Shown piece by piece: positions 1,535 through 60,370 of a stretch of 64,000 nt of DNA. Location: positions 124,001 through 188,000 of the IMG/VR virus record IMGVR_UViG_3300035181_000471, one strand, 5' to 3'. Position 1 is the stretch's first letter. The number at the start of each line of letters is the position of its first letter. The notes under the pieces were generated by a model. It was not told the origin of the DNA, ran no database searches, and saw only the letters and a program-made list of their open reading frames with translations. The translations under genes and the position numbers were made by a program.

Positions 1535-1554
1535 ACTTCCTGCTTCTTCTTTGA
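1535..1554 (+). promoter_or_regulatory. candidate late promoter motif
   Basis: ACTTCC-tgctt-CT-tcttt-GA, directly followed by SD-like GAGG and ATG 1565. Confidence 0.5.
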
Positions 1555-1564
1555 GGAATGTTGA

Positions 1565-3973
1565 ATGGCTCGTCCCCTAGAAGATAATTTAGATCTTAAC
1601 CTAAATCAAGCCCAGAATTTACTGATGGAGAAGCTAGCCTCCGACCCTTCAGTATTGACTGAGGCTAGATTATGGTATAATACCACCGAAAAAGTTGGTA
1701 AGTATTGGAATGGGACAAGTTTAATCCTTCTAGATGGTCTCGGAGGTGGTGGAACACCACCCTACATTACCACCATCGGTGACGCTACAAATGCTACTTT
1801 CGTCCTGACACACGGCTTAGGGACCACTCATGTAGCCGTGTCCATTTTTGAAACCACAGGCTTCAAACGAAAAGTTGACGCTGGCATTGAAATTCGTGCT
1901 ACAAGTGCCAATCAGATCACACTTCTTTTCGCAGTTCCACCAGCCGTAAATTCCTATGAAGTAATTGTATTCATAGCAGGTAGTGGTGCCAGTGTCATTG
2001 GACCCACGGGAGTTACAGGAGCAACCGGAATCGGAGCCACTGGAGCCGCTGGTAACACAGGAGGAACGGGTGTAACTGGAGGAACTGGTAACACAGGAGG
2101 AACGGGTGTAACTGGAGGAACTGGTAACACAGGAGCTACGGGACAAACTGGTAAAACCGGAGGAACCGGAAATACAGGTAACACAGGGAATACTGGAGCT
2201 ACTGGACTAACAGGAAATATAGGTAACACAGGAGCTACTGGACTAACAGGTGTAACTGGAGCTACTGGACTAACAGGAAATATAGGTAACACAGGAGCTA
2301 CTGGACTAACAGGTGTAACTGGAGCCACTGGACTAACAGGTGTAACTGGAGCTACTGGACTAACAGGTGTAACTGGAGCCACGGGAAATATAGGTAACAC
2401 AGGTGTAACTGGAGCCACAGGAGGAACCGGAAATACAGGCTCAACTGGTTCTACGGGAGCCACTGGCGTTGGAACAACCGGAAACACTGGTAATACAGGA
2501 AACATTGGAGCAACAGGATTAGTGGGTCCAACCGGGGCCGGGTCTACCGGAAACACTGGAGCTACAGGGGCTACAGGGGGAACAGGGGGAACAGGGGCTA
2601 CAGGGGGAACAGGGGGAACAGGGGCTACAGGGGGAACAGGGGCTACAGGGGCTACAGGGGGAACAGGAAACACGGGTCAGACAGGCAGCAATGGAGCAAC
2701 CGGAGCCACAGGACCAGCCTCAGACACGGTTATCAACGCAAAACTAAGCCCTTATAGCGCCGTTGGAGATGGAACTTCTGACGATACCACCCCACTACAA
2801 ACAGCCATCAATGACGCCAACACTCTTTATCTATCCACTGGAAATAGAGTAACGGTCTTCCTACCAAAAGGAAACTATTCCGTTACAGCTTTGACCATTA
2901 AATCTGGAGTTCACCTAACCGGATCTGGTTGGGGTTCCATCATTCAGGCAAGATCCAACAACAGAATCATTCGTGCCGCCCCAGATGGTGACTTCACAGC
3001 TACTCTTAAGGACGCCAGAATTGACAATCTGACCATTGATGGTCAGATGAGAAACAACCCATCTTGGGCCACTGGTAGCGCCATTGGAACTTGCCAAGGT
3101 ATCGGTATTGAACTAGCCGCTGACCCCACCAACTATATTGGGATTGACAATGTTTATATCTACGATACTCGCCTAGAGGGTGGCTATTTCTATAGAGTTG
3201 GAGTAGACATTGGTCGTATCAAAACTAAATTCTGTGGTCTTGGCACCGAAAATGATGGATCAGGACTAGCGTTTGATTCCTGCTATGACTCTAACATTGA
3301 TTTCCTAGATGCTAGAGATGTTAGAGGTCAGTGGGGGTGGCTAGTGCAGTCCTCTACATACCCAATGACTATCACATCATTCTTAATCACCAATCCTCAC
3401 AATGACGGATGCTGTGTTCGTGGCGCTGAAAATGTAAACATTATTTCTGGGTCTATCAACAATATCCAAGAGCGCGGAATCAACATTCGCGGGGACATAG
3501 CTGGATTCGGGCCATGTAAAAATATTACCATCGGACCCGTGTACATCAATAATAGTATCGGTGGTTACGGTGGTATCAGCGTCTATCAAGCCCAAAATGT
3601 AACCATCAATACCCCTACGATTGAAAACTGCTATTCTGGCATTGCACTTGAAGGTGGTGCGACCTACAACGGTCATGTGCTTATTTACCCAAGCTTCAAG
3701 GGTGGAGTCATTGTGCCTATTTACACAGACGCCGATGGTATGTATACCTCTGCCGGAAGTGGTGGAGGCACAACTGGAGCTACTGGTGCTAATGGAACAA
3801 CTGGAGCTACTGGTGCTAATGGAACAACTGGAGCTACCGGAGCAACCGGACTTTCTAACACATTTATATCCACCACCGTTCCGGTCGGAACTCCCCCTAC
3901 CTATCTTTGGATTCAAACGGGACTAGGACCATCAGGACACGGTTTTACATTCTGGGTTGAGGACGGACTATGA
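1565..3973 (+). CDS. collagen-like fibre/tailspike with pectate-lyase-3-type beta-helix (putative depolymerase)
   Basis: About 240 aa of G-x-T triplets, then [20 protein letters not shown]...VFLPKGNY...[10 protein letters not shown] and beta-helix-like repeats. Confidence 0.8.
2000..2715 (+). repeat. collagen-like G-x-T coding repeat with 9/27/36/63-bp tandem units
   Basis: 36-bp unit x2 at about 2053-2124; 27/63-bp units at about 2195-2390; 9-bp ACAGGGG(CT/GA) units at 2564-2667. Confidence 0.9.
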
Positions 3974-4266
3974 CTTTAAGAAACGCATTTGAAGATCTAG
4001 CAACGGATCAAAGGCTTGATCAAACCAACGCCTTGCTTCGCCGCCTAGTCAAAATCATGGAATCCCAAGCTACGGTAGATGGTCAGAATCGTCAAAGAAT
4101 GACCATGGATGCCATTGCCGCAGGTTTGACCCTAGGAACAGTGTCCACCATCACTAACCCAGTTCCCATCGGCAATGTGGCTACGATGTCTGGTGTTGAC
4201 CACCGTCAATTCGCGGATATAGCTAGAACCGCATTCAATACAGGTCTTAGAAGTAAACTGAATTAA
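3970..4266 (+). CDS. hypothetical small virion-associated protein
   Basis: 98-aa ORF overlapping the upstream stop (ATGA) and tightly coupled to the next gene. Confidence 0.6.
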
Positions 4267-4275
4267 GGATATACT

Positions 4276-60000: not shown

Positions 60001-60295
60001 AGCTAGTGGCTGAGGTTAGAATGACAGACTCTCTTGGGAACTCAATGGTGGCTCCGCGATTATCGCCTCTGCCCTCAGTGGCCCAGGAAGCCATCTGGAG
60101 GGGATCTAGAACCCCATTAATATAGTGCTTTCCATCGAAGCTAAAACCAGTTAACCCTAGAGTTGGGTTGAAAAACGCATCGTTGTCTTCTACACGGATT
60201 ACACAGGAAGCCGTGGCTCCGCTTCCAAACATCTGCTGTAGTCCCGTGGAGTCCAGGGACGAAGAAGAAATCAAGGGTGGAAAAGTGTTAACCAT
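57047..60295 (-). CDS. modular virion appendage protein with C-terminal six-hairpin-glycosidase-like (alpha/alpha)6 domain
   Basis: RTDWQG..RTN and PQVELGTVRTSFIPT (spike/CBM-like); C-terminal YAYDQAVALIA, YRTGAHAW, STEHNID, ALDLNTWG. Confidence 0.6.
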   Translation of the reverse strand: MVNTFPPLISSSSLDSTGLQQMFGSGATASCVIRVEDNDAFFNPTLGLTGFSFDGKHYINGVLDPLQMASWATEGRGDNRGATIEFPRESVILTSATSLTIFDQSTNPFTVWMSFIQGDMNALLDNFSPTRVLDTGNLTFDASTKTIIRSLGSWPEDGVKIGDSITFSGFVGNNLTVTVAGYMTGDTSLTGIIVNEAIVDANEFGTTTIYPHSRLEPKAIQYCSGRVTVSFVPEEGSYIEANVFLHLDFVQDQAYADFSNYYASTDLSDLINWNGFYQERKWILNQTKALNATPGYDISYTHTTPNSFAGRGNWTAPNYTAPFTGSVSFSGSYSDAYTGPIAGSVSGVVVTDYPLYRVLAFDIVANVEYPTLPYYSVLDGSGHWSIANASAGYKVAKLLKFGEGTSQPLSFTNEVISGSGTSFTLTALGGLTSQSPTISTLTRTDWQGTIPLLPTSRTNSFWNSLLTGGGAAPTGWTQPTATGTSTPGASTLGGPGTAYTQTATAQRPYLSQTVTLNANTSYCFSMLVEAVSGGLTAQEVLGGALPSGTITYPVCPANPSGTAAGTLTTGILTTILTIGATSGATTLRCGIGTVAAGTGTIRFSHPQVELGTVRTSFIPTPTGGTASVTDYTLSGATVTLAQSTGTGTLKWTGTGNFVYTLVATTDYTASIDPNYAVELWKKTDIEYYIDTVPALTNQTWSTGNRPWTYLDGDYTAKLVAASGTPGSRAEITRNHGGLVRSYIIPPTDSAYASLSNRCYAYDQAVALIASLAYKVQDPNTPDFLAEWLIKAQDSTSKEWYFSFDATTGLSVDPYYRTGAHAWCCYALLLYAHLMPEGQFATAATTAARAGVDRLLQDKATVGPHQLIKGGRGVYTNDVYANAPIAWFSTEHNIDCYFALQACGHVTGVSSYTTEANSLKTAIVAELWNADAERFYQGFNGTPDTADALDLNTWGAMFLLAAGETAKATAASINALAFRMTVGLVTGFVPYLPDRGYPGVSPYPWSEGTFQYELLARKLGSNSSTIVTINNGILPNRMPDYGWAYSLLPDQVSYVSDWGNVAGTAWAIIANEPSLYSIVLTPL

Positions 60296-60308
60296 AGAGA
60301 CCGTTACT

Positions 60309-60329
60309 CCTACTAAAGTGTTTGAAAGT
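60309..60329 (-). promoter_or_regulatory. candidate late promoter motif (minus strand)
   Basis: Minus strand ACTTTC-aaaca-CT-ttagta-GG, running into SD AGGAG. Confidence 0.55.
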
Positions 60330-60350
60330 AGTTCTTCCAGCCAGAAACGA

Positions 60351-60370
60351 ACTTCTGACTTCTTTTTTGA
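60351..60370 (+). promoter_or_regulatory. candidate late promoter motif
   Basis: ACTTCT-gactt-CT-ttttt-GA. Confidence 0.5.

Follow-up and report, generated by a model that had tools for sequence, protein, structure and literature searches.

What is the short sequence that recurs in front of the structural genes of a large phage, and what reads it? The window considered here, 64,000 nucleotides (nt) long, comprises bases 124,001-188,000 of the 221,217-bp IMG/VR record IMGVR_UViG_3300035181_000471, and a first-pass annotation had proposed that an intergenic motif in it, ACTTTC-N5-CT-N5/6-G, is a phage late promoter. The best explanation is that the motif is a compact promoter of this jumbo-myovirus clade, serving virion (late) genes and some other genes; judged from sequence, we put the probability of this at about 0.6. 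The assignment is based on the position and orientation of the copies, their occurrence after terminators, as a divergent pair and directly 5' of a tRNA gene, the lack of a conserved RNA structure, and conservation at orthologous gene junctions. A phage-specific promoter consensus is an expected kind of element, and a late consensus of their own is common in large lytic phages. The other 157 kb of the record served as out-of-sample DNA.

Architecture and Window Copies of the Motif

The motif takes the overall form AAA..AACTTTC-N4-TCT, followed by a T-rich stretch and then by a purine-rich segment. If the A of ACTTTC is counted as position 1, box A, (A/G)ACTT(T/C)(C/T), occupies positions 0-6, between an A-rich stretch (about -8 to -4) and four variable bases. 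Box B, (T/C)CT, is situated at positions 11-13 and is followed by 4-8 T/A-rich bases, and the purine-rich box C, often (T)AG(A/G)(A/G)G, begins at about position 18. The sequences listed in the first-pass annotation are all found at their positions, and 12 of its 16 sites form one coherent family. The other four (26905, 31125, 39413 and 41005) fail at an expectation value (E) <= 10 with R1, a sequence-only Infernal model built from an alignment of the 12 best window copies (alignment A2), and cannot be told from the ordinary pyrimidine-then-Shine-Dalgarno (SD) sequence upstream of genes or from background. The seeds of R1 are sites chosen by the first-pass annotation and their scores of 11.4-15.3 bits arise by construction, so that the out-of-sample and cross-genome results are the only tests of the model. 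The seed copies, with their R1 scores, are given below.

1527-1555, plus strand: ACTTCCTGCTTCT..GAGG (site 1535), 11.5 bits; 30 nt 5' of the ATG of the collagen-like tail-fibre gene 1565-3973
7154-7181, plus strand: GCTTTTGAACTCT..GTAGAAG (site 7161), 11.8 bits; imperfect box A; before the gene of a 1351-residue fibre, 7199-11254
14849-14874, plus strand: ACTTTTCAACTCT (site 14854), 13.0 bits; before the fibre gene 14868-17519
23714-23743, plus strand: ACTTTCAGTATCTAAAGTAGAAG (site 23722), 12.8 bits; in a divergent gap, 143 nt 5' of the gene 23865-24275
33557-33586, plus strand: ACTTTCTAATCCT (site 33565), 14.4 bits; 83 nt 5' of the tail sheath gene 33648-37538
40177-40206, plus strand: ACTATTGCACTCT (site 40186), 12.1 bits; 15 nt past the terminator hairpin 40142-40171 and 31 nt 5' of the gene 40217-40990
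41977-42006, plus strand: ACTTTTAATGTCT (site 41986), 13.6 bits; before the gene of a 430-residue virion-module protein, 42041-43333
45668-45696, plus strand: variant copy ACTTTCCCTTACA..GTAGG (site 45676), 11.4 bits; before the gene 45706-46452
46896-46923, plus strand: best copy, ACTTTCAGAATCT (site 46904), 15.3 bits; before the gene of a 65-residue protein, 46945-47142
50946-50973, plus strand: AAAACTTTCAGCCTCTAGTATAGAG (site 50953), 13.3 bits; before the gene 50987-51265
60308-60336, minus strand: ACTTTCAAACACT..GTAGGAG, 14.2 bits; before the inverted tail-fibre gene 57047-60295
60343-60370, plus strand: ACTTCTGACTTCT (site 60351), 14.2 bits; before the gene starting at 60395

The last two copies stand back to back, on opposite strands, in one divergent gap of 99 nt (60296-60394), which bears out the reported switch of strand at the inverted tail-fibre gene. 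The statement that most intergenic gaps carry the motif was too strong, as a supported copy is present in 11 of about 21 gaps of at least 24 nt. Likewise, the motif was said to follow terminators, which is true of site 40186, where a T run follows the hairpin, and possibly of 14854, but not of most sites. At site 14854 only 20 nt separate the beginning of the motif from the first in-frame ATG (14874), and an SD could not be seen; the gene either begins at a later start codon or yields an mRNA with hardly any leader. Small palindromes noticed on inspection at four sites (7161, 50953, 46904 and 40186) do not recur among the copies and were discarded. Three further R1 matches in the window lie outside the seed set, the first of them being the best such match.

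3844-3867, plus strand: ACTTTCTAACACA, possible internal copy, uncertain; 9.0 bits, E 0.19; at the end of the gene 1565-3973, about 100 nt 5' of the gene 3970-4266
55948-55971, plus strand: ACTTTCTGATGCT, possible internal copy, uncertain; 7.7 bits; in coding sequence, about 170 nt 5' of the gene 56120-56455
38003: 5.1 bits; just 5' of the gene at 38044

Statistical Support

Enrichment over shuffled sequence, on which the first-pass annotation had made its motif depend, is absent for the bare consensus with a mismatch allowed and present for a tighter form. ACTTTC-N5-CT with at most one mismatch gives 66 matches in the whole window against 66.5 expected, that is, no global enrichment. The exact pattern occurs 8 times against 3.0 expected, a count that 3 of 100 shuffles reach, and 5 of the 8 are in gaps. 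ACTTYY-N4-TCT, a pattern written after the sites were seen, occurs 11 times against 3.55 ± 2.05 expected, and none of 100 shuffles reaches 11. The intergenic gaps of the gene list make up 3% of the window (about 1.9 kb); of the 11 ACTTYY-N4-TCT matches, seven fall in them, and the four in coding sequence correspond to the chance level. The excess resides in these gaps, and every gap match to this pattern or to the exact one is on the strand of the following gene.

Randomly seeded expectation maximisation (EM) was applied to 32 regions upstream of genes located past 118 kb, each shortened by its final 16 nt to hide the SD. It returned 'Aaa..aacTTtc.a..tcTa.t', which is the motif of the first-pass annotation with a 5' A-tract added.

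Copies Elsewhere in the Genome

Most genes in the first 100 kb of the genome are on the minus strand. Among the R1 matches listed in the other 157 kb, 20 of 25 are likewise on the minus strand, including seven of the nine best, and seven of these nine are located at the 5' junctions of co-oriented genes or tRNAs. Those copies are as follows.

13.8 bits: between a tRNA gene and an HNH endonuclease gene
12.2 bits: AAAAACTTTCAGTATCTAGTATAGAATG, reaching exactly to the 5' end of tRNA-Ser
12.0 bits: at the junction preceding the portal gene
9.4, 9.3, 8.8 and 8.6 bits: in gaps preceding co-oriented open reading frames (ORFs)

The tRNA-Ser copy is nearly identical to that of window site 50953. An array of 18 tRNA genes is present at L012:620-4491 (genome about 60.3-64.2 kb, minus strand), and copies are found at its edges and directly 5' of tRNA-Ser(GGA). 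A 10.4-bit copy (L013:2444-2466, plus strand) is situated in a gap between two minus-strand genes in the opposite orientation; it could be a promoter for an antisense RNA or a small ORF, or a false positive.

In the half of the genome that is on the minus strand, 11 upstream regions contain sigma70-type extended -10 boxes, GTATAATA/TGGTATAAT (e.g., L011:17340-17372, minus strand), and one such box is 20 nt downstream of a motif copy. They probably belong to early promoters recognised by the host sigma.

Conservation in Related Phages

The nearest isolate is Tunturiibacter phage Tunturi_5 (308.7 kb, Acidobacteriota host), whose sheath protein is 43% identical to that of the present phage. A related-locus search started from the sheath protein gave just this phage again, on a second contig. 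Syntenic contigs of other relatives were reached through homologues of the 430-residue virion-module protein, to which the identity is 52% in L025, 46% in L026, 42% in L030 and 32% in L031. Copies of the motif occupy matching gene junctions in four relatives (42-52% protein identity), including Tunturi_5. In L025 the twelve best R1 matches are all on the gene strand; a 12.2-bit copy precedes the homologue of the 430-residue protein and is orthologous to window site 41986, and a 9.2-bit copy precedes the sheath gene and is orthologous to 33565. The junction sites of L025 are 9936, 1085, 13686, 8379 and 17099. The site at 13686 has the box B variant CCTTACA (ACTTTTCCTTACA), similar to that of 45676, at an apparently matching junction. 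The L025 sheath junction holds two tandem copies (1085-1107 and about 1135-1165), and that of the present phage holds one.

Weaker copies lie in matching gaps of L026 and L030, and one in L030 precedes a gene for a 67-residue protein, as site 46904 precedes that for a 65-residue protein. The sheath genes of L025, L026 and Tunturi_5 are each preceded by a counterpart of site 33565, and site 41986 is kept in the orthologous gap of L025, L026, L030 and Tunturi_5. Alignments of the orthologous gaps (A6 and A7) reveal ACT, CT and A..G as invariant islands in otherwise diverged sequence. R1 finds no copies in L031, the most distant contig, which indicates that the motif has a clade boundary.

Five of the six top matches in the virion module of Tunturi_5 are in plus-strand gaps, among them the one that precedes the sheath gene. 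Inspected by eye, the gaps of this GC-rich phage carry GACT(A/T)(C/T)-N4-5-(T/C)CT-N0-4-TAG(A/G)G, often right after terminators. In another part of its genome a 12.2-bit copy, GGACTTTCGAGCTCTCTTGTGAACG, stands in front of the galactosyl-transferase gene gp300, 30 nt past a terminator hairpin.

The gap in front of the head operon is long in all four phages compared, and in L025 the equivalent gap contains a full copy ending TATAGAAGAGG. In the window this gap (43334-43529, 196 nt) precedes the gene of a 164-residue protein and the major head gene; it comprises a terminator hairpin at 43352-43385 and then TCTATAGGAG, 10 nt before the ATG.

Proposed Transcription Start

The copies lie upstream of transcription units and are co-oriented with them, also after terminators and in divergent gaps. 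The class of these units is taken from the genes downstream, and late expression is not exclusive: copies precede tRNA and HNH endonuclease genes here, and glycosyltransferase and replication-initiator genes in Tunturi_5. A structured RNA is ruled out by the lack of consensus base pairs in the aligned copies, an Rfam search of the window that returned no family, and the 125-nt leader after site 23722, which folds no better than shuffled sequence (z +1.66).

In copies close to genes the SD occupies positions 19-24, and the 5' end of tRNA-Ser is at position 24. These positions require a start at or before about position 19 (limit 19-24), and a start at the terminal G (about position 19-20), as the first-pass annotation had suggested, would be consistent with both. 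Transcription would then begin in or just before box C, with box B spanning roughly -9 to -7 and box A roughly -19 to -14. At promoters that directly adjoin a gene, the purines at the start of the transcript may serve as the SD as well.

A conventional sigma70 promoter (TTGACA-like -35, spacer of 16-18 bp, TATAAT-like -10) does not describe the copies, as only A-richness is conserved upstream of box A. A reading with TTGAAA/TTTTAA as -35 and TATAGA as -10 fits just two copies. Between window positions 30001 and 50000, sigma70-like matches are depleted, numbering 9 where 20.6 are expected, and not one falls on a motif copy. The first-pass annotation had also found no match to the sigma70 or T4 late consensus, and in this it was right.

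Candidate Sigma Factor

The first-pass annotation had looked for the reader of the motif in a phage sigma factor or RNA polymerase (RNAP), and had referred to sigma-like proteins in the window. No sigma signature is found in the window, and six-frame Pfam searches of the 221-kb record match neither Sigma70_r2 nor Sigma70_r4_2. The lone sigma-like protein, recognised by predicted fold only, is encoded about 80 kb upstream of the window, at genome positions 43,250-44,062 on the minus strand (L021:1483-2295). This 270-residue protein is 34% identical to gp3 of Tunturi_5, annotated as 'RNA polymerase sigma factor', and in both phages the gene adjoins one for a primase-like protein. Metagenomes contain 19 homologues of the 270-residue protein, and several of these are encoded on contigs of 140-460 kb. 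An AlphaFold2 model built with the alignment of homologues has a mean predicted local distance difference test (pLDDT) score of 79.9. The top Foldseek matches of the model in the PDB and among Swiss-Prot models are almost all of the sigma70 family, covering residues 62-269 with a probability of up to 0.99. The C-terminal domain matches sigma4 domains in superpositions at 1.8-2.3 Å with Z of 8-8.9, and the top 50 entries are all sigma factors.

Both a sigma2 and a sigma4 fold are thus seen in the predicted structure. It is plausible from the model that the protein is a divergent sigma factor, and it is the best candidate for the reader of the motif. We infer, with lower confidence than for the promoter itself, that the host RNAP would be re-targeted to the motif by this putative phage sigma. 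Of the two kinds of reader first considered, a sigma factor retains a candidate, by predicted fold, while an RNAP is unlikely, none having been found in the record or in the complete Tunturi_5 genome. Tunturi_5 also encodes gp211, an ECF-type (extracytoplasmic function) sigma recognisable by Pfam; no homologue of it was found in the record, which is 77% complete, and one could lie in the missing 23%.

Weighing the Alternatives

Several observations weigh against a promoter read by this protein. About half of the copies start 29-35 nt before an ATG, with box C as an SD at normal distance, and part of the apparent 3' end of the motif is ribosome-binding sequence. The gap before the major head operon (43334-43529) has no box A and no full copy, and R1 matches above 7.2 bits are absent from the genome at 99.5-124 kb and 188-221 kb. 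Two RNA runs contain 5% of the sampled words and, over 41800-47300, gave short capsid-gene contigs only, with no ends or depth steps. The CheckV completeness of the record is 77%. The assignment of the 270-residue protein as a sigma comes from the predicted fold: the protein has no Pfam signature of region 2 or 4 (PF04542, PF04545/PF08281), no PDB sequence match and no hhalign match to the ECF sigma gp211 of Tunturi_5. The Foldseek E is about 5e-3, domain orientation keeps the template modelling (TM) score below 0.3, and the VIA Z of 8-9 is middling. A sigma factor with sigma2 and sigma4 domains expects about 16-17 bp between -35 and -10, and boxes A and B are just 4-5 nt apart. As to box C, the start codon is 41-143 nt away from the copies at 23722, 33565, 41986, 46904 and 60351 and is served by a true SD of its own, yet the purine box is retained, which argues that it is more than an SD.

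The close spacing of about half of the copies to an ATG would be explained by an element acting on mRNA, either a pyrimidine-rich enhancer upstream of the SD or a site on 5' leaders for a phage RNA-binding protein or ribonuclease. The four weak sites share the same pyrimidine-rich-then-GA-rich shape, and gp125 and gp223 of Tunturi_5 are annotated as RNA-binding. We nevertheless consider this rather unlikely, given a strong copy directly 5' of a tRNA gene, the five distant copies with an SD of their own, copies after terminators and in a divergent gap, where initiation is needed, and the lack of conserved structure. Equally doubtful is a binding site for a phage activator or repressor, on the model of the T4 MotA box and its cooperation with the primary sigma of the host. 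Box A would then be the operator or activator box, and box B would be followed by a weak -10-like T(A/T)NNNT. T/A-rich hexamers (TAGTAT, TAAAGT, TATAGA) do occur 6-12 nt after box A, a layout that resembles the box and -10 element of T4 middle promoters, and Tunturi_5 encodes MarR-type and other regulators (gp72, gp235). Conservation of the hexamer is, however, poor, and the A2/T6 pattern is often missing from it. At short-spacing sites a start 7 nt past the hexamer would be within or beyond the SD, and no candidate binding protein was identified in this genome.

A promoter for an unrecognised phage RNAP, single-subunit and T7/N4-like or multisubunit and highly diverged, is quite unlikely. The motif length, about 25 nt, is similar to the 23-25 nt or so of T7-group promoters. 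The last bases of several copies are (T)ATAG and purines; such ends (TCTAGTATAGAG, TTATAGAGGGAG, TCTATAGGAG) recall positions -4 to +5 of the T7 group and are a lead only. The record, at 77% completeness and with many window proteins lacking an assigned family, leaves room for such an enzyme. The upstream half of the motif is nevertheless unrelated to T7-group promoters, and no such polymerase gene was found in the record or in Tunturi_5. PF00940 (T7-type RNAP) has no match in the record, with sensitivity unverified since the control matched in no control genome, and PF00623 (Rpb1) has none in the record or the complete Tunturi_5. A 10-bit PF00940 match in Tunturi_5 was rejected, being out of frame, with a stop, inside gp128, whose protein has no RNAP domain and no homologue here. 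Of the 350 Tunturi_5 ORFs, two are annotated as sigma factors (gp3 and gp211) and none as an RNA polymerase. Finally, the copies might be a compositional artefact of AT-rich gaps aligned by eye, in keeping with the lack of enrichment of the one-mismatch consensus and the failure of four listed sites. This is extremely improbable, as it is contradicted by the EM recovery, the co-oriented out-of-sample matches, the orthologous gaps in four relatives and the shuffle test.

Comparison with Known Promoter Systems

Taking the motif as a promoter, its closest working analogue is found in the gp36-dependent middle and late promoters of phiEco32 and phage 7-11. In phiEco32, gp36 is a distant sigma homologue that directs the host RNAP to a short consensus centred at -11.5, and early genes use sigma70 promoters (PMC12276001). 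Both systems would combine a phage sigma having sigma2- and sigma4-like parts with a short phage-specific consensus near the start, and the GTATAATA-type boxes in the other half of the present genome parallel the early use of sigma70. In contrast to the AATGTA of phiEco32, the consensus here, ACTTTC-N4-TCT, has two boxes over about 13 nt and an A-tract, and is known from sequence alone. No sequence similarity is detectable between phiEco32 gp36 and the candidate sigma.

The consensus of ECF (group 4) sigma factors, as for E. coli sigmaE, is GGAACTT-N16-TCTGA, and ECF promoters start transcription about 6-7 nt past the -10 box. The motif has the words AACTT and TCT in the same order, and the candidate protein has a predicted sigma2 plus sigma4 architecture. 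The echo of ECF elements at a shorter spacing, remarked on in the first-pass annotation, holds in all 12 copies: some 6 nt separate the words, against about 16 in ECF promoters, which brings them about 10 bp closer together, and the Pfam ECF signatures are absent. An actual ECF promoter is excluded by the SDs at positions 19-24 and the tRNA 5' end at 24, which do not allow a start about 35 nt after AAC. That a two-domain phage sigma reads a bipartite promoter with AACTT and TCT one helical turn closer than in ECF promoters is a tentative idea with little probability. If true, it would imply a repositioned sigma4, or a new contact mode at -20 to -7, in jumbo phages of Acidobacteriota and related uncultured hosts.

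T4 late promoters have TATAAATA at -10, are served by gp55, gp33 and the sliding clamp, lack a -35 element and give very short 5' leaders. The present motif is similarly compact, lacks a -35 element, stands immediately upstream of late-gene SDs and belongs to a large myovirus. The sequence differs, TATAAATA being absent from the aligned copies, which rejects a T4-type late promoter, and gp55 has no counterpart of the sigma4-like domain of the candidate. The two-box spacing is similar to that of sigma54 promoters (TGGCAC-N5-TTGC), but their invariant GG at -24 and GC at -12 are absent and the candidate factor has a sigma70-family fold.

Genomic Context

The window (47.6% GC) is mostly a single plus-strand virion module. 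Its landmarks, apart from the genes located above, are as follows.

1565-19813, plus strand: collagen-repeat tail fibres
33648-37538, plus strand: tail sheath gene
44040-44945, plus strand: major head protein gene
57047-60295, minus strand: inverted tail-fibre gene
Small DNA-metabolism island, minus strand: weak SprT-like match, deoxynucleoside monophosphate (dNMP) kinase and UvrD helicase

A radical-SAM protein gene (phrog_1802) is located at 11882-13249 among the collagen-like tail-fibre genes. The 430-residue protein, P0020 (42041-43333), starts 75 codons later in the public gene call (355 residues), and its homologues align across the full 430 residues. P0020 is also found on a 286.6-kb contig elsewhere, and a fuller genome of this phage therefore exists. 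The DNA of the phage is present in sediment and microbial-mat metagenomes. Run X11, a freshwater metatranscriptome, contains 151-nt contigs that align with the major head gene at window positions 44298-44707 and differ from it at 1-3 positions, so that a close relative is present in that RNA library, possibly as transcripts.

Homing-endonuclease genes of the GIY-YIG and NUMOD3 types interrupt the virion modules of the relatives at varying positions, and the window has none there.

L026: 7350-7730 and 11358-11942, GIY-YIG/NUMOD3 genes
L030: 2948-3559, 6875-7699 and 11772-12326, GIY-YIG/NUMOD3 genes

Significance

The motif belongs to a clade of phages of roughly 220 kb and larger with a single cultured member, Tunturi 5, in whose description paper the words promoter, sigma and RNA polymerase do not occur. 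A conserved consensus would yield the first map of transcription units for the clade and help to fix gene starts, and the map would separate sigma70-type early units from motif-driven ones. The hypothesis that a gp3-like sigma reads the motif would become testable in a laboratory-grown phage-host pair, and the two-box geometry would be of real interest should the candidate, with its predicted sigma2 and sigma4 domains, turn out to read the motif. Genetic tools for Acidobacteriota are few, and the motif may also provide promoter parts for this phylum.

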